NCBI GenBank assembly: GCA_002189035.1
Contig: CM007989.1
Location: forward strand, 2,046,001-2,110,000
DNA: 64,000 nt
Origin: Utricularia gibba
Lineage: Eukaryota; Plantae; Magnoliophyta
Direction of reading: 5' to 3'
Of the stretch, positions 16,660 to 29,152 are shown in pieces. Under the pieces are notes generated by a model. The model made no database searches, was not told the DNA's origin, and worked only from the letters and a program-made list of their open reading frames with translations. Position numbers and translations under genes: made by a program. Each line of letters starts with the position of its first letter. Position 1 is the stretch's first letter.

Positions 16660-17607
16660 TTAGAGGAGGGCAACATCATTTCCAACTAGAAAGCCATTGT
16701 CGTAGCAGTAAGGCCACGATGAATGAGGCAACATCATCTGCGGTTGGAATGGAGGCATATCCGATGAGTTGAAGTTCCATATTGCGGGATGGAGATCCAT
16801 GCTTTCTTGAACTGGGAAATTGACCGTATCCACTGCTTGAGTTGCTTTCATCTGCTGTTGAAACCAAGCAACCTCAGGGGTTCCGCAGTTCCGCTTTCCG
16901 GGATAAAGATCCCCGCTTTCTTGAACTGTAAAACCCGCAACGGCCCCTGCTTGAGTTTCTTGCGGCTGAAACTGAATCATGTCAGATGATTCAAGGTTCC
17001 ACATTTCAGGATAAAGATCCCTGCTTTCTTGAACTGTAAAACCCACAAGTTGAGTTTCTTGCGGCTGAAACTGAAACATCTCAGATGATTCAGGGTTCCA
17101 CATCTCGGGATACACATCCCTGCTTTCTTGAACTGTAACATTCCCAACACCACCGGCTTGAGTTGCCTTTATCGTGTCTATCCATCGTTCAGCCGTGTCG
17201 ATCTTAGCCTTCAACAACTCAACGAAGGATTCCAACTCCCCTCCCGACAAAGAACTAATCCTTTCATCATAGTCAGAGTACTTGGCGTGGTTGTTCTTTT
17301 TCGTCATCTGCTTGGTCTGATCCTTGAACAAATCAGACAAGTGATAGGTTTTGGTTCTTGAACCAAAACCCCCGTTTCTGGACTCGTAGCACTCTATCAA
17401 TCTTTCAAGTACTTCTGGTTCAGGAGGCCACACCGAGGGTTCATTTGATTCTCCAAAGGGATCCTGAATGATCATCCCGACCTCCACGTCACAAAGAACA
17501 GAGAGCTCTAAAGCCGATTTTTCAAGGGCCTTCTTCCTTTTCTGAAACGCCCTTCTCCGTTCCTTCTCACTTCGTATCAGTTCCATGCGCAGCTTCGCTC
17601 CTTCCAT
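16660..17607 (-). CDS. Type I MADS-box protein copy 1 (AGL82/AGL103-like, probably M-beta); 315 aa, 4 C-terminal repeat units
   Basis: Intronless. MEGAKLRMELIRSEKERRRAFQKRKKALEKSALELSVLCDVEVGMII is a MADS domain, followed by PSVWP and YSDYDERISSLS..L..LLKAKI. Confidence 0.85.
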   Translation of the reverse strand: MEGAKLRMELIRSEKERRRAFQKRKKALEKSALELSVLCDVEVGMIIQDPFGESNEPSVWPPEPEVLERLIECYESRNGGFGSRTKTYHLSDLFKDQTKQMTKKNNHAKYSDYDERISSLSGGELESFVELLKAKIDTAERWIDTIKATQAGGVGNVTVQESRDVYPEMWNPESSEMFQFQPQETQLVGFTVQESRDLYPEMWNLESSDMIQFQPQETQAGAVAGFTVQESGDLYPGKRNCGTPEVAWFQQQMKATQAVDTVNFPVQESMDLHPAIWNFNSSDMPPFQPQMMLPHSSWPYCYDNGFLVGNDVALL

Positions 17608-17749
17608 CTTCCAAAACGAGACAAGGAGGATGTCTTGGCAAGAAGAGAGTTCAGAGGATGATCAAGACAAGAGAGCCACTAATCCTTCGTAAGTAAACTG
17701 ATTAGTGCACTATGTAAACTCTCATTATAAAGCATACTATTTCATTAAT

Positions 17750-17811
17750 AACAGATGTTGTTTCCTTAATGACTCTTTGGTCAAAGAGTCATTAAGGAAA
17801 CAACATCTGTT
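17750..17811. repeat. Perfect inverted repeat: 30-bp arms, 2-nt loop
   Basis: AACAGATGTTGTTTCCTTAATGACTCTTTG-GT-CAAAGAGTCATTAAGGAAACAACATCTGTT; arms were checked base by base. Confidence 0.95.
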
Positions 17812-18822
17812 GGTGCGGGTGCGGGCGCGGGATATCTTTTCTTCATTCACTTTCAATCCATCGATGTCAAGTTATTTTTCTCTGTCAACTCTGTTGATGG
17901 AATTAGCGGTTTCGTGTACTGCTTTTTCTTCACATAGTGTGGCAGTGCGCCTTTTCGGTGGCCTTTTAGTTTCTGGTTGTTTGACCTGTGCTTCGTTGTG
18001 GTGACTGTGTATGGAGGAAACAGGAAAGACAGCGTGCTTTGCAAGCACGGAAACTGGGCTCTAGCATTTGCTTGATGATTTTTTTTTTTGAGAAAGATGG
18101 CCTGCTCTAACTCGTTTTAACTTTGTCTACTGGTTGTAATGAGAAAAAATTGATCCATCAGAATTCTATGGTAGAATGTTCGATGCAGATCCATTTGTTC
18201 GTTTCTTTTTTTTTTTTTTTTGAGTATATGCATCGCATTATGTTTGAAGACATGATTTTGGATTAGCCTCCAAATGTCTACTGATTGTAATGAGAAAAAT
18301 TTAATCCCTCAGGATTAAATCATGCTTATCCATTTGCCCTTTTCGGTTTTTTGAGGATATGTATCGGCTTATGTTTGGATTAGCCTCAGAAGTGTCTGTT
18401 AGAAAATCTTGCCCATCTTTTTCATGGATTGTTCTTTTTAATTCTTCATAATGTTCATGAGCTTCCTGCATTTATATTTTGGCTGTTGCTGACTGTAATT
18501 GGAGATTAGCATATCATGTGTAGACAGTTTTTAAGTTGGTTAAGATATGATGTGGAATTCTTGAACCAGTTTCTGAATTTTCTTTTTCAGGATCCAGTCA
18601 TTAAACCATTGGTCGAGCATGATTCAAAAAATTTACAGCGATTCCTTCCTGAAATACCATTTTGGGTGACGAATCCAGATTACGACCGTGTAACCTTTCT
18701 CACCTTTATTTCTGGTTTCCAACATTTGTATCTCTCTGTTTTTTCTGTGACATTTTATCTGATATTATAGGTTGACTGCCTCAATTAGTTTTTGGAGATC
18801 ATTTGGCCTTACGTGGATAAAG
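17806..18822 (+). pseudogene. Synaptotagmin fragment (3' part of exon 1 to exon 3)
   Basis: Homologous to about 23440-24165. No ATG, the exon-1 donor reads CAAG|TT instead of CAAG|GT, and exon 3 has an in-frame TAG (GTT GAC TGC CTC AAT TAG). Confidence 0.88.
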
Positions 18823-18867
18823 TGATCATGTGACATTTTTCTTCTTGCCAAGACATCGTTTTGGAAG

Positions 18868-19920
18868 ATGGGAAGAGCTAAGCTGTGCATGGAACTTATA
18901 CCAAATGAGAAGGAACGGAGGGCGTTTCAGAAAAGGAAAGGGTCCTTGAAAAATCGGCTCTAGAGCTCTCTTCTCTTTGTGACATGGAGGTTGGGATGAT
19001 CATTCAGGATCCCTTTGGAGAATCAAATGAACCCTCGGTGTGGCCTGCTGAACCAGAAGTACTTGAGAGTTTGATAGAGTGCTACGAGTCCAGAAAGGGG
19101 GGTTATGGTTCTCGAACCAAAACCTATCACTCGTCTGATTCGTTCAAGGATCAGACTGAGCAGATGACGGAAAAGAACAACCAGTACAACCACTCTGTCT
19201 ATGATGAAAGGGATTAGTTCGTTGTCGGGAGGGGAGTTGGAATGCTTTGTTGAGTTGTTGAAGGCTAAGATCGACACGGCCGAACGATGGATAGACACCA
19301 TAAAGGCAATTCAAGCAGGTGCTGTTGGGAATGTTACAGTTCAAGAAAGCAGGGATGTTTATCCCGAGATGTGGAACCCTGAATCATCTGACATGTTTCA
19401 GTTTCAACCGCAAGAAACTCAACTTGTGGGTTTTACAGTTCAAGAAAGCGGGGATCTTTATCCTGAAATGTGGAACCTTGAATCATCTGACATGGTTCAG
19501 TTTCAGCCGCAAGAAACTCAACCAGAGGATGTTATGGGTTTTACAGTTCAAGAAAACGAGGATCTTTGTCCTGAAATGTGGAATCTTGAATCATCTGACA
19601 TGATTCAGTTTCAGCCGCAAGAAATTCAAGCAGGGGCCGTTGCGGGTTTTACAGTTCAAGAAAGCAGGGATCTTTATCCCGGAATGTGGAACTTCGGACC
19701 TCCTGAGGTTGCTTGGTTTCAGCAGCAGATGAAGGCCACTCAAGCAGTGGATTCGGTGAATTTCCCAGTTCAAGTAAGCATGGATCTCCATCCTGCAATA
19801 GAGAACCTTGACTCATCGAATATGCTTCCATTCCAACAGCAGATGATGTTGCCTCATTCATCGTGGCCTTGTTGCGACGATAATGGTTTTCTGGTTGGAA
19901 ATGATGTTGCCCTTCTCTAA
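18868..19920 (+). pseudogene. Type I MADS copy 2 (inverted), two frameshifts, 5 repeat units
   Basis: Starts ATGGGAAGAGCTAAG. A -1 shift near 18940 gives TAG at 18961, there is a +1 G near 19210, and one Arg codon is deleted. The C-terminal half is open (ORF 19201-19920). Confidence 0.8.
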
Positions 19921-20294
19921 TCGTGCGGAAGATGAAGATGGTGCGAAATAATCTCCATGGTCTAAAGCGGTTTTACAGTTTACAGTCTTCTGGTAGAATT
20001 CATGGTTTTAGAAATATTGATTCCAGTTCATCTTAATAATCTCACTAGGAGCCATGTTAGGTAGTTTGCAGTTTAATTGAAGGGCAAACACTAGATTTTT
20101 TTCCCCTTTGCTCATTGAATCGTGCATTCAATGAAACAGTGTTTCATTGTGGCCATGTCTGTAACTGTTTCCCAATGATCTTTGGATTCGATCGCCACTA
20201 GTCTCATGGTTGCCTGTTAATGGTTCGTCCACCATGAAAGAACACATCTTGAAAAAATTGCAAATCCTAAGTGCTCAAATTATAGCCCATCTTC

Positions 20295-20710
20295 CGTCCC
20301 TCTGACTGATCTGCAAATGACCGTGTTTGAGAACTGTGGAGAGCCAAGAGAGTCACGAAGATGACTGAGGAAGTTGCTGTTGGAATTCTTTCCGGTGTGG
20401 TGAAGGTCTAAGGAATCTTCACCAGTTCAGTTGCGAACTCAAAAGCAGGGCAGAAGTTTTTCAGCCTTCTTCCTGGTGAAATTGTGCTTGCCCATTGGAA
20501 GGCTTCAGTACCTTCTCTCCCATTTTTTTCTCTATATCACAGACAAGATATGTGATCATGTGCAATGCCAATGCCGTCTGTAACTTTTATCCAGTAAACA
20601 AAGAGTGCTTAATCTGTTGTTGTAGCCTTGTGCAGTTGCTCTGTTATGTTAATGGGCGACACAAGAATAAAATGCTTTGCTTTTACCTTCTGGTTTCATA
20701 AACTGACGCG
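20295..20710 (+). pseudogene. ERD7/senescence-domain gene fragment (intron 1 end, exon 2, part of exon 3, 3' UTR), inverted
   Basis: Reverse complement of about 27070-27460. In-frame TAA at GTGAAGGTC-TAA. Confidence 0.85.
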
Positions 20711-21108
20711 ACACAAATTCCTATGAGTAGTCTCAATATTCCTAGCAGTTGTTTAAAATAAAAACAGTACACCTTTGTTTTCCGCTCTTCGCCTTGGAAG
20801 ATGATGCGGGCGTAGGGGTTCATGTGATGCTTTCCCTCAAGATCTAGAGCTTCATATATTGTAACCACAAGCACTCCACCACCATCTGGTGCATCTTCAT
20901 GGGGCTTTTGAGCTGCATCTGAATCTTCAACATCGTTGCGTGCTTCATCCTCCTTGAAAGGCTTGTAGTTAACTCCAGCTCGATCTGTCCACGAGTTTTA
21001 TCATTTTGAGGATCATTTGAGTCCAATGTCTTGAGAAGATCAAACGTCTTCACCACTGGCTCATCAGGCACAAGCTCCTTCAAGGGAACAGCGTTCATGC
21101 ACATCTTA
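20710..21108 (-). pseudogene. Synaptotagmin exon 10 fragment, inverted
   Basis: Translates to NAVPLKELVPDEPVVKTFDLLKTLD...ELT and GKHHMNPYARIIFQGEERKTK with a frameshift; homologous to about 25950-26320. Confidence 0.88.
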
Positions 21109-21447
21109 TTAAGGGAAAGAGTAGTACTTAGGATTTGCAAGTTTTTAATGTTGGTTCATGATGCATTAATCATTAACAGGTAACCATGAAACCAGTGGTG
21201 ATCGAATCCAAAGATCATTTGGAAACAGTTACAGACATGGTCACAATGAAACAGTTTGCTTCATTGAATGCAAAATTTCATTAGCAAAGGGTAAAAAAAA
21301 CTAGTGTTTGCCCTTCAATTGAACTGCAAACTACCTAACATGGCTCCTTGTGAGATGATTACGATGAACTGGAATCAATATTTCTAAAACTGTGAAAGCG
21401 CTTTTGAGCATGGAGACGATTTCGCACCATCTTCATCTTCCGCAAGA

Positions 21448-22487
21448 TTAGAGAAGAGCAACATCATTTCCAACTAGAAAGCCAGTGTCGTAGCAGTAAG
21501 GCCACGATGAATGAGGCAACATCATCTGCGGTTGGAAAGGAAGCATGCCCGATGAGTCAAAGTTCCATATTGCGGGATGGAGATCCATGCTTTCTTGAAC
21601 TGGGAAACTGACCGCATCCACTGCTTGAGTTGCCCTCATCTGCTGCTGAAGCCAAGCAACCTCAGGGGTTCCGAAGTTCCACATTCCGGGATAAAGATCC
21701 CCGCTTTCTTGAACTGTAAAACCCGCAACGGCCCTGCTTGAGTTTCTTGCGGCTGATACTGAATCATGTCAGATGATTCAAGGTTCCACATTTCCGGATA
21801 AGGATTCCCGCTTTCTTGAACTGTGAAACCCATAACAGCCTCTGGTTGAGTTTCTTGCGGTTGAAACTGAACCATGTCAGATGACTTCCACATTTCAGGA
21901 TAAAAATCCCCGCTTTCTTGAACTGCAAGATCCACAAGTTGAGTTTCTTGCGGCTGAAACTGAAACATGCAAGATGATTCAGGGTTCCACAGCTCGGGAT
22001 AAACATCCCTGCTTTCTTGAACTGTAACATTCCCTGCTTGAGTTGCCATTATGGTGTCTATCCATCGTTCGGCCGTGTCGATCTTAGCCTTCAGCAACTC
22101 AACAAAACATTCCAACTCCCCTCCCGACAACGAACCAATCCCTTCATCATAGACAGAGTGGTTGTCCTGGTTGTTCTTTTCCGTCATCTGCTCTGTCTGA
22201 TCCTTGAACAAATCAGACAAGTGATAGGTTTTGGTTCGAGAACCATAACCCCCCTTTCTGGACTCGTAGCACTCTATCAATCTTTCAAGAACTTCCGGTT
22301 CAGGAGGCCACACCGATGGCTCATTGGATTCTCCAAAGGGATCCTGAATGATCATCCCAACCTCCACATCACAAAGAACAGAGAGCTCGGAAGCAGATTT
22401 TTCAAGGGCCTTCTTCCTTTTCTGAAACGCCCTTCTCCGTTCCTTCTCACTTCGTATCAGTTCCATGCGCAACTTCGCTCTTCCCAT
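21448..22487 (-). CDS. Type I MADS copy 3, one frameshift at 21732-21734 (possibly a sequencing error), 5 repeat units
   Basis: MGRAKLRMELIRSEKERRRAFQKRKK starts at 22487, with an in-frame upstream ATG at 22547. GGCCCTG here versus GGCCCCTG in copies 1 and 4; restoring one base joins the two ORFs. Confidence 0.78.
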
Positions 22488-23384
22488 CTTCCAAAACGAT
22501 GTCTTGGCAAGAAGAGAGTTATCAACACAACTGAAACTCTCATTCATATACTACTACATTGTTTCCTTCATTAGTCTTTGATCGCAAAGACTTTCGCGCG
22601 CTCCCCAGCTATTACATTTACAACGGTCGATTTTTCTCGGGTCGGGCCACAACATTCGTCATTCTCTAGAGCAAACCGAAAAGGGATATTTTTGGGCACC
22701 AAAATTTCCCAATCCCCGATCGGGGAGAACTCCACGGCGCCGCCATGGATCGTATATTCATCCCCTCCCTCGCCGCCGCAACACTCCGATGGGTCCATCG
22801 GCATCGCCGCCGCCAGTGAGAGAAAAACAAATCGTCAAGAACCTCGAAGTGTCTAGACATTCCGCGGAAGGTTGCTGATTCCGAAACCGAAGCTCCAGAA
22901 GCACAAAATCCTCGCAGAGGCACATAAAAACTTGGAGTCCATTCCCAACTCAGAGAGAACAAATAGACAACCGTTGCCTTTCGTGTGCAACTGTTGTCGT
23001 TTCTGAGAAAAAAAATGTGGAGTAAAAATTAGTCCAATTTTGGTACAAGACATGTAATAAACGGGACCCAGCGTTATTTGAGAGCACACCTGTCGCCTGT
23101 GTACCTTGCCGACTGGGGAAGGTCATCTCGTCTCCCTGCAGTGACACATTCCCAACAAACCGTAATCGGATTCAGGGCCACGCGGCGCCACCAGAGATGG
23201 ATATCTAAATGCGTCTTTTCCGAGTCTCTACTACCAAAAAATGCTATGGCGAATGACCAAAGGTGAAGCAGGTTATTTTATAATGCATGCTGTCTAGATG
23301 AGAGAATCTGCCGACAGAGTGATTCTTTTCGTGCTGGGTCGCCTATTAAACAGCCTAAAATCTGGACTTGAAGTGGATTAGGAG

Positions 23385-26300
23385 ATGGGATTTCTGAGTA
23401 CTGTGTTTGGTTTATGTGGGTTCGGCGTTGGGATTTCTGTTGGTGCGGGCGCCGGATATCTTTTCTTCATCTACTTTCAATCTATCGATGTCAAGGTAGT
23501 TTTCTCTATCAACTCTGTCGATGGAGTTTGCGGTTTCGTGTACTGCTTTTTCTTCACGTAGTATTGTAGCGCGCTTTTTCGGTGGCCTTTTAGTTTCCGG
23601 TAGTTTGCCCTGTCCTTCGTTGTGGTGACTGTGGATGGAGGAAACAGGAAAGACAGCGTATGTTCGATGCTGATCCATTTGTCCTTTTCGGTTTTTTGAG
23701 TATATGTATCGGATTATGTTTGGATTAGCCTCAGAAGTGTCTGTTAGAAGATCATGCCCATCTTTTCATGGATTGCTCTTTTTAATTCTTCATAATGTTC
23801 ATGAACTTCCTGCATTAATATTTTGGCTGTTGCTGACTGTAATTGAAGATTAGCATATCATGTGTAGACGGTTTTTGAGTGGTTAAGATATGATGTGCAG
23901 TTCTTGAACCAGTTTCTGAATTTTCTTTTTCAGGATCCAGTCATTAAACCACTGGTCGATCATGATTCAAAAAATTTACAGCGATTCCTTCCAGAAATAC
24001 CATTTTGGGTGAAGAATCCAGATTACGACCGTGTAACCTTTCTCACCTTTATTTGGGTTTCCCACATTTGTATCTCTCTGTCTTTTCTGTGACATTTTAT
24101 CTGATATCATAGGTTGACTGGCTCAACAAGTTTTTGGAGATCATGTGGCCTTACCTGGATAAAGTAATCGTTGTTTCGAGCATCATTCACCCTTTATTAC
24201 TAGGACTACATGCCATTTCAGCAGTTTTGCTTCCAATTCGTGTAACTTTTGTAGGCTATATGCAAGACAGCTGAAAACATAGCTACACCGATTATTCGTG
24301 AGCAAGCTCCTAAATATAAGATTGACTCTGTTAACTTTGCGTCTTTGACTCTGGGATGTCTGCCACCCACTTTTCAAGGTACATCAAGCTACTTTTTGGC
24401 TTTATCAAGTGCTTTTTGCATAGGACAGAAGCACTTTTGGGTGGTGGCTTTTACGTTTAGAACCCATTGTATGCTTGCTGTTCGTGTTTGTGTTCAACAT
24501 GTTTTGATGGCTCACTGTATTTTCATGCATTATAACTTTATATGCTCTCCGTATGTAGGCATTAAAGTTTACCTTACTGAAGAAAAAGAGTTGATCATGG
24601 AGCCTTGCATCAAGTGGGCAGGCAATCCTAATGTAACTGTTGCAGTGAAGGCATATGGACTGAAAGTAACTCTTCAGGTTGCTTGCTTCCTTGCTGCTTT
24701 GGTGGTTTCATGACAACTTAGAGATAACAAATTCTCATATGGATCATTCTACTCAAGTGTTTTTCTTCTTGAATCTACCCTGTGTTTTCTTATTTATGCG
24801 CAGAAAGACTACCATCTTTATAAACATCGGAACATTTAGCTTTCAGAAAGGCCAAATAACAAATTTTTCTATGCTGTTGCAGGTAGTGGATATGCAGGTT
24901 TTCATTCATCCACGGATAACTCTGAAGCCTCTGGTTCCAAGTTTTCCATGTTTTGCCAAAATCTATGTATCGTTGATGGAGAAGGTAGCCACATCTATGT
25001 GATAGAAGAAGTTGCAAAGTGCTTCACAGTTGAACAAAAATGAAAATTGATCTTCCCATGTATTCATTTTTTTTTTTCATTTCTTTATTCTCAGCCTCAT
25101 ATTGACTTCGGACTCAAGTTCGCTGGGGCAGATGTCATGTCAATTCCTGGACTCCACCATTATGTGCAGGTACCATTGTCTTACATTGTGCCTTGAGACA
25201 GTGAATATGGTCTCTCAATGTGATCAAAGTTCTATGAGAGGAAAAAACAGTAACAATGAATGTTAGATATAAAGAAAGTCCGTTTTAACGGGGATTACAT
25301 ATTCTATTTCATCTTTTTTGCGATAACCAGTAGATGCATTTGTTTTTCTTCAGCAACTCTGAAATATCTGGTGTTTGTATTGCATTTTCGACCTGATGTT
25401 TGGCTGGCTATGTTCTCTAGTTCTTCTCTTTTTTTTTGGATATTGAAAAGGATTTATGCACAGGAGCTTATCAAGGATCAAGTTGCCAGCATGTATCTCT
25501 GGCCTAAAACTCTTGAAGTTGAAGTCCTTGATCCCACAAAGTATGCATCTTCCTGTGATTTGAATATACGTTGAACACTCTTATTTTGGTTTCTAATGTA
25601 AAAGCTAATTCAATGTCACATGCCAATCAGAGCCATGAAGAAGCCTGTTGGAGTTCTCCATGTAAAGGTTTTGCGCGCTATGAATTTGAAGAAGAAAGAT
25701 CTGATGGGAGCATCAGATCCCTATGTAAAGCTGAACCTCACAGAAACTAAGGCTCCATCTAAAAAGACCACAGTGAAGCACAGCAATCTGAACCCTGAGT
25801 GGAACGAAGTCTTCACCCTGGTTGTAAAAGATCCTGAAACACAAGTTTTGGAACTCACTGTTTATGACTGGGAGCAGGTAGTTAATGCATTGCAAACTAT
25901 TGATCCTTAGAGCCAAGCTGATTTTATTGTTTCCTGATCAGATAAGCAAACATGATAAGATGGGCGTGAACGCTGTTCCCTTGAAGGAGCTTGTGCCTGA
26001 TGAGCCAGTGGTGAAGACGTTTGATCTTCTCAAGACACTGGACCCAAATGATCCTCAAAATGATAAAACTCGTGGACAGATCGAGCTGGAGTTGACATAC
26101 AAGCCTTTCAAGGAGGATGAAGCACTCAACGATGTTGAAGATTCAGATGCAGTTCAAAAGCCCCGTGAAGATGCACCAGATGGTGGTGGAGTGCTTGTGG
26201 TTACAATATATGAAGCTCTAGAACTTGAAGGAAAGCATCACACGAACCCCTACGCCCGCATCATCTTCCAAGGCGAAGAGCGGAAAACAAAGGTGTGCTG

Positions 26301-26862
26301 TTTTTATTTTAAACAACTGCTAGGAATTTGTGGTTGAGCATCAAACTTTTCTGGGTTTCATCAGCTTCCCTGCATCATCTCTCTCTGTTCCTGACTTGCC
26401 TCTATTTCCACAGCAAGTGAGGAAAAACCGGGATCCAAGGTGGGATGAGGAATTCACATTCATTCTTGATGAGCCGCCATCGAAAGAGAAGCTGCACGTG
26501 GAGGTACTCAGCACCTCAACCAAGATCGGCTTACTACATCCAAAGGTATTTACCAATACCATCCATCCTTGACATTGTTTTCATGGTAGAAGGCTTGAAG
26601 AGTGTGATGCCAACTTGTTCGAATGGACCCATTTTACATCTGGCTTCGCCTGCACGATGATCAAAACACCCACATTGAGCTGCAGCTTATCTTCTGATAT
26701 ACTGAAGTTTGTGGGAGTTGATGTGACAATCAGGAAACCTTGGGCTATGTGGATATCGACCTGAGCGATGTCGTCTCCAACCGGCGAATAAACGAGAAGT
26801 TCCATTTGATAGACTCCAAGAACGGACGCATCCAGGTGGAGCTGCAGTGGCAAACCTCCTGA
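23385..26862 (+). CDS. SYT1: Plant synaptotagmin (SYT1/SYT2-like: TM, SMP, two C2 domains), 538 aa, intact
   Basis: 12 in-frame exons: 23385-23495, 23934-24032, 24113-24163, 24255-24378, 24559-24677, 24883-24984, 25095-25169, 25464-25540, 25631-25877, 25942-26292, 26414-26545, 26734-26862. Motifs: PEIPFWVKNPDYDRVDWLN, KKKDLMGASDPYVKL, KNRDPRWDEEF, SKNGRIQVELQW. Confidence 0.94.
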
Positions 26863-27199
26863 GTTCTTCCAAGTCCGTACATGATGGCTGCTTGCTGGTG
26901 TGCCGGAGCTCACCCTTATTTACTACATGTTTGGCTTCCTTTTTTCTGAAGAACAATATACTTGTGGGACTTCTGTTTTGAGAAATACAAAAATGAAAGG
27001 AAATTAAAGCAGAGTAGCCGCGCATCTCCATTTTATACTCTGCTACTTCGTTGTGCAGGCACCTAGCCGAGAAGGCGTCGTCGGTTTATTAAACCAGAAG
27101 GTAAAAGCTAAGCATTTTATTCTTCTGTCATCCATTAACATAACAGATTAAACACTCTTCGTTCACTGGATACAAGTTACAGACGGCATTGGCAATGCA

Positions 27200-27460
27200 C
27201 ATGATCACATATCTTGTCTGTGATATAAACAATCAGTTCAGAAAAAAGAGAAAAAAATGGGAGCTTCATCTAAAAGTGGGAGAGAACTTACTGAAGCCTT
27301 CCAATGAGTTCGTAACTGAACTCGTGAATAATACTGAGACCTTCACCACGCACGGAAAGAATTCCAACAGCAACTTCCTCAGTCATCTTCGTGACTCTCT
27401 TGGCTCTCCACAGTTCTCAAACACGGTCATTTGCAGATCAGTCAGAGGGACGGAAGATGG
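27200..27460 (-). pseudogene. ERD7/senescence-domain gene fragment with internal deletions
   Basis: Matches about 29890-30180, joined directly to the ERD7 3' UTR (GCACATGATC|ACATATCTTG); most of exon 3, exon 4 and part of exon 2 are missing. Confidence 0.85.
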
Positions 27461-27799
27461 GCTGTAATTTGAGCACTTTGGATTTGCAATTTTTTCAAGA
27501 TGCGTTCTTTCATGGTGGACGAACCATTAACAGGCAACCATGAAAGATCATTTGGAAACAGTTACAGACATGGCCAAAATGAAACACTGCTTCATTGAAT
27601 TCGCAATTCCATGAGGAAAGAAGAAGAAAATCTAGTGTTTGCCCTTCAATTAAAGTGCAAACTACCTAGCATGGCTCCTTGTGAGATTATTAAGACCAAA
27701 TGAAAGCAATATTTCTAAAACAGTGAATTCTATCAGAAGACAGTGAACTGCGCTTTTGACAATGGAGACGATTTCGCACCATCTTCATCTTCCGCACGA

Positions 27800-28948
27800 T
27801 TAGAGAAGGGCAACATCATTTCCAACTAGAAAGCCATTATCGTAGCAGTAAGGCCACGATGAATGAGGCAACATCATCTGCGGTTGGAATGGAGGCATAC
27901 CCGATGATTCAAAATTCCATATTGCGGGATGGAGAGCCATGCTTTCTTGAACTGGGAAATTGACCGTGTCCACTGCTTGAGTTGCCCTCATCTGCTGCTG
28001 AAACCATGCGACCTCAGGGGTTCCGAAGTTCCACATTCCGGGATAAAGATCCCCGCTTTCTTGAACTGTAAAACCCGCAACGGCCCCTGCTTGAATTTCT
28101 TGCGGCTGAAACTGAATCATGTTAGATGATTCAAGGTTCCACATTCCGGGATAACGATCCCCGCTTTCTTGAACTGTAAAACCCGCAAAGGCCCCTGCTT
28201 GAGTTTCTTGCGGCTGAAACTGAATCATGTCAGATGATTCAAGGTTCGACATTTCAGGATATAGATCCCCGCTTTCTTGAACTGTAAAACCCACAACAGC
28301 CCCTGGTTGAGTTTCTTGCCGCTGAAACTGAACCATGTCAGATGACTTCCACATTTCAGGATAAAGATCCCCGATTTCTTGAACTGCAAGACCCGCAAGT
28401 TGAGTTTCTTGCGGCTGAAACTGAAACATGCAAGATGATTCAGGGTTCCACAGCTCGGGATAAACATCCCTGCTTTCTTGAACTGTAACATTCCCTGCTT
28501 GAGTTGCCATTATGGTGTCTATCCATCGTTCGGCCGTGTCGATCTTAGCCTTCAGCAACTCAACAAAACATTCCAACTCCCCTCCCGACAACGAACCAAT
28601 CCCTTCATCATAGACAGAGTGGTTGTCCTGGTTGTTCTTTTCCGTCATCTGCTCTGTCTGATCCTTGAACAAATCAGACAAGTGATAGGTTTTGGTTCGA
28701 GAACCATAACCCCCCTTTCTGGACTCGTAGCACTCTATCAATCTTTCAAGAACTTCCGGTTCAGGAGGCCACACCGATGGCTCATTGGATTCTCCAAAGG
28801 GATCCTGAATGATCATCCCAACCTCCACATCACAAAGAACAGAGAGCTCGGAAGCAGATTTTTCAAGGGCCTTCTTCCTTTTCTGAAACGCCCTTCTCCG
28901 TTCCTTCTCACTTCGTATCAGTTCCATGCGCAACTTCGCTCTTCCCAT
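27800..28948 (-). CDS. Type I MADS copy 4, intact, 382 aa, 6 repeat units
   Basis: Uninterrupted ORF from MGRAKL... to ...GNDVALL*, with an in-frame upstream ATG at 29008. Confidence 0.88.
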   Translation of the reverse strand: MGRAKLRMELIRSEKERRRAFQKRKKALEKSASELSVLCDVEVGMIIQDPFGESNEPSVWPPEPEVLERLIECYESRKGGYGSRTKTYHLSDLFKDQTEQMTEKNNQDNHSVYDEGIGSLSGGELECFVELLKAKIDTAERWIDTIMATQAGNVTVQESRDVYPELWNPESSCMFQFQPQETQLAGLAVQEIGDLYPEMWKSSDMVQFQRQETQPGAVVGFTVQESGDLYPEMSNLESSDMIQFQPQETQAGAFAGFTVQESGDRYPGMWNLESSNMIQFQPQEIQAGAVAGFTVQESGDLYPGMWNFGTPEVAWFQQQMRATQAVDTVNFPVQESMALHPAIWNFESSGMPPFQPQMMLPHSSWPYCYDNGFLVGNDVALL

Positions 28949-29019
28949 CTTCCAAAACGATGTCTTGGCAAGAAGAGAGTTATCAACACAACTGAAACTC
29001 TCATTCATATACTACTACA

Positions 29020-29152
29020 TTGTTTCCTTCATTAGTCTTTGATCGCAAAGACTCATTAAGGAAACAAGATCTGTTGGCGCGGGGTATATTTTCTCTACGA
29101 TGCCAAGGTAGTCTTTGACCGCAAAGACTCATTAAGGAAACAGTATCTGTTG
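29020..29152. repeat. Imperfect hairpin (29020-29067) plus a direct duplicate of its core and right arm (29110-29152) flanking a synaptotagmin exon-1 remnant
   Basis: GTCTTTG-ATCG-CAAAGACTCATTAAGGAAACA is repeated as GTCTTTG-ACCG-CAAAGACTCATTAAGGAAACA. Between them lies TCTGTTGGCGCGGGGTATATTTTC...GATGCCAAGGTAG, resembling SYT exon 1. Confidence 0.85.

Follow-up and report, generated by a model that had tools for sequence, protein, structure and literature searches.

Does the number of repeat units in the C-terminus of a transcription factor carry meaning when it differs between neighbouring copies of the same gene? This question is raised by a type I MADS-box gene cluster of Utricularia gibba, found in a stretch of 64,000 nucleotides (assembly GCA_002189035.1, contig CM007989.1, positions 2,046,001 to 2,110,000 of the forward strand), referred to here as the window. 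The original prediction, made from the letters of this stretch, was that the copies are a lineage-specific set of transcription factors whose activation strength is tuned by the number of units in their tails. Our analysis points to another answer, which we consider probable: a birth-and-death cluster whose repeat tail was amplified from one motif, and in which the shifts in unit number are more likely drift than tuning.

Using the list of open reading frames (ORFs) together with a six-frame reading, we found that the window holds four related type I MADS-box genes at 16660-29008, designated c1 to c4. No fifth MADS copy was found in the 64-kb window by tblastn with c4 as the query. The genes, their repeat arrays and a tract common to two of them are located as follows.

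16660..17607, minus strand: c1, an intact type I MADS ORF of 315 amino acids (ORF list, Pfam) with four units (A, C, D and E), starting with MEGAKL and not with MGR
16732..17133, minus strand: repeat array of c1, with A at 17035-17133, C at 16927-17034, D at 16813-16926 and E at 16732-16812 (unit splitting; Tandem Repeats Finder (TRF) period 99)
16660-16731, minus strand: conserved C-terminal tail of c1, after unit E
18868..19920, plus strand: c2, a pseudogene, inverted and head-to-head with c1, with five units
19201-19920, plus strand: residual ORF of c2, 239 amino acids without the MADS domain, with the array at 19339-19848
21448..22487, minus strand: c3, with the MADS domain and intervening region (MADS/I) intact and identical to that of c4, and five units if read through, with the array at 21520-22022
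21636-22547, minus strand: c3 ORF as listed mechanically
27800..28948, minus strand: c4, intact, 382 amino acids from the conserved MGRAKL start, with six units (A, B, C, C', D and E) and the array at 27872-28483
21966..22565, minus strand: tract of about 600 nt in c3, with 100% identity to 28427-29026 in c4

Tandem repeats were detected by TRF in all four copies, with periods of 93-108 nt and scores of 236-635, and an ungapped offset scan gave the tail of c4 an internal-repeat score of 309 versus no more than 39 in 30 shuffles. When the tails were split at the VQES starts, c1, c2, c3 and c4 were found to contain 4, 5, 5 and 6 tandem units of 31-38 amino acids each, followed in all of them by a common C-terminal end. 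The count of five in c3 is valid only when the sequence is read through a frameshift. These counts and the common end are those given by the original prediction, which had also described the repeats as units of 33-38 amino acids. They are indeed tandem units, but their length range is 31-38, they belong to five positional types, and each difference in number concerns one type.

The five types, A-B-C-D-E, were separated by an identity matrix of all 20 units. Unit A is the first and has 99 nt; c2, c3 and c4 contain B; C is single in c1-c3 and double in c4; the penultimate unit, D, is divergent, and E is terminal. Orthologous units are 88-98% identical across the genes. Identity is 79-96% among A, B and C, while D and E reach 60-74% with the others. 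This positional orthology implies that the common ancestor of the four genes was already A-B-C-D-E. The comparison of units therefore indicates a five-unit ancestor, from which c1, without B, and c4, with C duplicated, each depart by one unit, in either direction.

The constraint on these regions was estimated from the ratio of non-synonymous to synonymous substitution rates (dN/dS). Between c1 and c4 it was 0.21 for the N-terminal 150 codons (17 synonymous and 16 non-synonymous differences) and also 0.21 for units D and E plus the tail (8 synonymous and 7 non-synonymous), which indicates purifying selection on the MADS/I region and on D, E and the tail. Units A and C gave a dN/dS of 1.14 (2 synonymous and 8 non-synonymous) with a dS of only 0.054. 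The central, variable units seem to evolve almost neutrally and to have been homogenised; the low dS of A and C fits homogenisation. For old paralogous units within c4 (A or C versus E), dN/dS was 0.14-0.26 at a dS above 1, and the motif itself therefore appears to have been retained.

Only two of the four copies, c1 and c4, are uninterrupted from the conserved position of the MGR-type start to the common C-terminal end, and c4 alone is fully canonical. A further in-frame ATG of c4, 60 nt upstream at 29008, would give a protein of 402 amino acids. The start of c1 reads MEGAKL versus MGRAKL (17599-17607, minus strand), with both G2 and R3 changed (G2E/R3G). In an alignment of 52 related sequences, at least 90% retain these two residues, and DNA binding by c1 may be impaired by the N-terminal change. 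In c2 the lesions are all located within the N-terminal 345 nt and comprise two deletions in the MADS box, of 3 nt and 1 nt, and an insertion of 1 nt that follows after about 270 nt. Because of the two frameshifting indels in the MADS/I region, its MADS domain runs into a stop; it also carries non-conservative substitutions, one of them changing R to C in the region of the first helix. The residual 239-aa ORF of c2 comprises the helical region and the five units, with a dN/dS of 0.33-0.48 versus c1 and c4, and would, if transcribed, make a tail protein without a DNA-binding domain. In c3 a run of GGGG near 21735, located at the junction of units C and D (the end of the third unit), is short of one G, and this 1-nt deletion makes the ORF end out of frame after three units. 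As the sequence stands, c3 is a truncated gene. Of the four-copy array originally predicted, then, four MADS copies are present, but just c1 and c4 are intact, c2 and c3 being damaged. For annotation, this means that only one or two of the four deserve to be called functional genes.

The Pfam search identified the SRF-TF domain (PF00319) in c1, c3 and c4, with E values of 3.1e-11, 2.1e-12 and 3.5e-12, respectively, all above the gathering score, and found no K-box in any copy at E values up to 0.1. The region after the MADS domain could be aligned with type I proteins only. The copies appear to be single-exon genes, the absence of introns being judged from their collinearity with full-length relatives. 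With the SRF-TF matches, no K-box, uninterrupted ORFs and damaged copies, the cluster agrees with its earlier description as type I, intronless, birth-and-death genes.

The tract common to c3 and c4 extends from about 80 nt upstream of the ATG, across the MADS/I region, and into unit A. Outside it the two genes are 83-97% identical. This indicates that the tract stems from recent gene conversion or that one of the genes is a recombinant duplicate. Homology between the copies ends 12-105 nt upstream of their start codons, and the promoters are therefore not common to the copies.

The structure of c4 was predicted by AlphaFold2 with the 52-sequence alignment. Residues 1-155 were modelled confidently, with a predicted local distance difference test (pLDDT) score of 86-96 for most of 11-150. 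Helices were placed at 14-39, 64-78, 90-109 and 122-151; the confident part comprises the MADS domain and three helices as far as residue 151. Residues 156-382 had a pLDDT below 50, and from 170 to the end no secondary structure was predicted, which we take as a weak indication that the tail is disordered. These 227 residues have a net charge of -23, with 12% D+E, 2% K+R, 13% W+F+Y and 28% Q+P+S. All units are net acidic, and the aromatic and acidic positions keep a conserved spacing in all 20 units. Such a composition is that expected of acidic activation domains, and the unit was correctly described at first as acidic/aromatic and Q/P/S-rich. Type I C-termini of Arabidopsis have been reported to be disordered and rich in experimentally mapped activation domains (PMC12373214). 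The acidic/aromatic, predicted disordered tail fits an activation region. Composition, predicted disorder and the survey of type I tails (PMC12373214) thus make the idea of an activation module reasonable for the motif, but this does not extend to the proposed dosage, which is weighed below.

Relatives were searched with phmmer (full HMMER scan) over 1.84 billion protein representatives, and 787 matches were obtained. The best showed 48% identity, and nearly all of the best 150 of the 787 align just to residues 1 to about 150-190. The top matches come from Lamiales (Paulownia, Erythranthe, Buddleja, Fraxinus, Genlisea and Dorcoceras). No protein among the 1.84 billion representatives matched the repeat array. 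In the ESM Atlas the whole protein led to 'MADS-box' clusters only and the tail to nothing, and the tail had no match in Pfam. Word-based protein searches, run with the full protein and again with residues 1-155, turned up a single relative, from Cynara, and a profile search gave 13 matches, none of them from Arabidopsis.

A hidden Markov model (HMM) of the 20 units detected one copy of the unit among 154 proteins, at residues 172-195 of Paulownia fortunei KAI3469307.1 (P0002; E 5e-4). The search of the unit and the full proteins, which had been proposed with the original prediction, thus provided 787 relatives but only this one match to the unit. The Paulownia protein is the best of the 787, with its 48% identity extending over residues 1-173, and belongs to the same Lamiales clade; the unit-like copy sits at the collinear position. 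It likewise has a repeat-bearing tail. However, it has one unit compared with 4-6 here, and its own tandem repeat (33 amino acids, 4 copies) is of unrelated sequence and lies further downstream. A similar stretch was recognised by eye in the Genlisea protein. The single collinear copy in Paulownia suggests that the array is an amplification of a pre-existing motif, and the searches support a lineage-specific unit sequence. There was no synteny with the Paulownia locus, where the neighbours are CAMTA, Arf and Pyr_redox_2/Pyr_redox_dim (pyridine-nucleotide-disulphide oxidoreductase). A derivation of the unit from the post-MADS 'EP.VWP' motif was also considered and rejected, the weak matches of the unit HMM there all having E values above 0.08.

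Repeated tails are found elsewhere in the family. With internal repeats called at a score of at least 60 and a z of at least 6, 28 of the 136 closest representatives of at least 200 amino acids have internal C-terminal repeats of their own, with units unrelated to the present one. A few of the 28 are gene-model fusions (P0018, P0032, probably P0027, and partly P0022 and P0061), and at least 10 are clean tandem arrays of unrelated units of 12-48 amino acids, from Cynara, Deinandra, Centaurea, Paulownia, Castilleja, Pisum, Melastoma, Cucurbita, Eucalyptus and Persea. The Eucalyptus unit has 46 amino acids and is present four times in E. grandis (P0121/P0167) and three times in E. globulus (P0168), in proteins that are 92% identical. 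The E. grandis gene, Eucgr.K02593 (EUGRSUZ_K02593), resembles those studied here in its collinear MADS and helical region (33% identity over residues 1-143, E 2e-19) and in a C-terminal tandem repeat whose number is one apart between close relatives. It differs in its unit, which is unrelated and not aromatic-acidic in the same way, and it is a rosid gene. Judging from these relatives, the family often has repeat tails of this general type, and the present case is lineage-specific and fairly ordinary. The novelty first ascribed to the repeat therefore holds for the sequence of the unit but not for the possession of a repeated tail.

In a limited literature check, we found no mention of tandem or internal repeats in type I MADS tails in recent treatments of type I genes or in the 2025 survey of their C-termini. 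Variation in the length of coding repeats is known in transcription factors, for example in the poly-Q/poly-A tracts of RUNX2 or ELF3. As in the Utricularia genes, it is the disordered regulatory region of a DNA-binding protein that is affected there, and the number changes by slippage or unequal recombination. Those tracts are homopolymers, whereas the unit here is a complex motif of 31-38 amino acids, and the variation here is among paralogues of one genome. The cluster and the survey of relatives together suggest recurrent C-terminal amplification in this subfamily, which merits a systematic look because type I C-termini are otherwise treated as unalignable and uncharacterised. That repeat-prone tails are a general, overlooked property of Mbeta-type genes, with different motifs amplified independently in different lineages and with unit numbers that shift between close paralogues (4/5/5/6 here) or sister species (4 versus 3 in Eucalyptus), and that this could serve as a fast evolutionary dial for the strength of activation or partner binding in the female gametophyte or seed, is a speculative extension that we regard as quite unlikely.

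The expected role of these genes depends on their subclass. In a quick maximum-likelihood tree, c1 and c4 formed a clade with a long stem and a support of 100 in the Shimodaira-Hasegawa-like approximate likelihood ratio test (SH-aLRT), inside a group of 14 rows whose identified members are all Lamiales (SH-aLRT 93 here, and 87-93 across the trees built). They were found on the side of Eucgr.K02593 (92 rows), opposite the proteins named AGL80, and this split had an SH-aLRT of 88. Eucgr.K02593 has been listed as Mbeta (Qiu and Kohler 2022, Table S2; PMC8788222). Its locus tag could be mapped, but the Erythranthe match could not be mapped to the Migut identifiers of that study. The AGL80-named proteins align with the query over the MADS domain alone (residues 3-76 and 1-81). 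Among the automatic names of the relatives, AGL82 (Mbeta) occurs side by side with PHERES, AGL80 and AGL90 (Mgamma), and this is so even inside a single Proteaceae clade. They are not diagnostic because they are mixed within single clades, and PHERES or AGL80 as automatic names mislead for this clade. The tree, with one published anchor and without Arabidopsis references, points to Mbeta-like genes. The AGL82/103-like affinity mentioned in the original prediction is thus favoured by the side of the tree on which the genes fall, but it depends on that single anchor.

Mbeta genes have been reported by Qiu and Kohler to have hardly any expression in the endosperm, with a presumed role in the female gametophyte or maternal tissue, and type I proteins to work as heterodimers in which Malpha pairs with Mbeta or Mgamma (PMC8788222). 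PHERES1 and AGL80, which are Mgamma regulators of the endosperm and central cell in Arabidopsis, are similar to the present genes in being type I and intronless and in having a disordered C-terminus with activation domains (PMC12373214). The AGL80-named proteins differ in their MADS-only match and in falling across the split in the tree. What has been documented for Mgamma genes in the endosperm and in hybrid barriers should not be transferred to these genes, and the cluster alone says nothing on hybrid barriers. The suggested relevance to such barriers is weakened by the Mbeta-like grouping, given the low expression of Mbeta genes in the endosperm (PMC8788222).

The history that we consider probable can be outlined as follows. 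The cluster would have been built by direct and inverted segmental duplication, with gene conversion later. Birth and death appear to be under way, c4 being canonical, c1 altered at the DNA-contacting N-terminal arm, c3 frameshifted and c2 dead. The first 155 residues would be the folded part, made up of the MADS domain and the helical intervening region, and by analogy with the family this part would pair with an Malpha protein and, as a heterodimer, bind CArG-type DNA. The remaining 160-230 residues would be a disordered acidic/aromatic tail, formed by the tandem amplification of one short motif. This motif is most likely a short activation or cofactor-docking element, which the old unit pairs seem to keep under purifying selection. 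Later, unequal recombination or slippage may have removed one unit from c1 and doubled one in c4. These plus-or-minus-one differences fall in the youngest and least constrained units and are more likely to reflect drift in a repeat-prone tail than adaptive tuning. The locus would then be a clean small example of tail growth, from one motif to a five-unit array and on to single gains and losses, with gene conversion between the paralogues.

Three other explanations were weighed against this. Additive units multiplied by unequal crossing-over could have produced a graded activation series, with the paralogues kept as a dosage series by selection for seed development or hybrid barriers. Such a series would agree with the acidic/aromatic nature of each unit, with the motif kept between old units, with the abundance of mapped activation domains in type I tails (PMC12373214) and with a unit number that varies among the paralogues and, in a related gene, between Eucalyptus species. 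But intact genes occupy just two of its four 'steps', and the genes are Mbeta-like, a class barely expressed and dispensable in the endosperm (PMC8788222). The claim that dosage is tuned by unit number also finds no support in differences that are a single gain or loss, one unit either way from the ancestral five, in variable units with a dN/dS of about 1. We consider this explanation quite unlikely.

Drift could also account for everything, if arbitrary segments are expanded by slippage and unequal recombination in a weakly constrained, disordered tail and the unit and its number are functionless in a decaying cluster. About 20% of the closest family members have independently acquired unrelated units, c2 and c3 are broken, c1 is without the near-invariant G2 and R3, and the central units are near neutral. 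What makes this improbable, although somewhat less so than a selected dosage series, is the dN/dS of about 0.2 for D, E and the tail between c1 and c4, the values of 0.14-0.26 in old unit pairs despite a dS above 1, and a motif that is recognisable in Paulownia at the same position. The conserved spacing of aromatic and acidic positions over the 20 units and the predicted disorder would be expected, too, of a short linear motif whose binding partner lies outside the general activation machinery, such as a co-regulator or the Malpha protein, its repetition raising avidity or driving condensates. Its expectations for the sequence are the same as those of an activation domain, there is no known partner, and the tail has no match in Pfam, the atlas or the protein representatives; we regard such multivalent docking as very improbable.

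Several points weigh against the birth-and-death cluster with drifting unit number, which we nevertheless prefer. The dN/dS values of single units are based on at most 10 differences. Low pLDDT in the tail is partly expected, because the alignment has no tail homologues. The Mbeta placement combines the one published anchor with AGL80 proteins that were named automatically. The frameshift of c3 falls in a homopolymer of 4 nt and might stem from an error of assembly. Finally, the promoters differ, so some of the intact copies may be silent.

The neighbours of the cluster in the window are ordinary plant genes (HMA, DUF630/632, PI-PLC-X, eIF-4B and Senescence/ERD7-like). Opposite the MADS regions of c3 and c4, in antisense, are two ORFs of 185 amino acids (22017-22574 and 28478-29035, both on the plus strand). 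They have no family support and are identical to each other because of the conversion tract, and most likely they appear only because ORFs were listed mechanically. Two further ORFs, at 20683-21140 (minus strand) and 25885-26337 (plus strand), are located between MADS copies and look like synaptotagmin/C2 fragments. They are 96% identical in inverted orientation (20734-21109 versus 26330-25955), and the one that was scanned matched no Pfam family at an E value of 0.001. Their position between the MADS copies suggests that the duplicated blocks brought pieces of neighbouring genes along.

Direct-repeat blocks with 90-94% identity are found upstream of c1 and c3, at 17818-18035/23442-23659 and 18322-18827/23667-24169. 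They lie at unequal distances from the two genes, and about 850 nt of extra sequence is present directly upstream of c3, so the promoter-proximal DNA differs among the copies. The 1.2-kb head-to-head spacer between c1 and c2 contains a perfect hairpin at 17750-17811, with a stem of at least 20 pairs (17757-17804).

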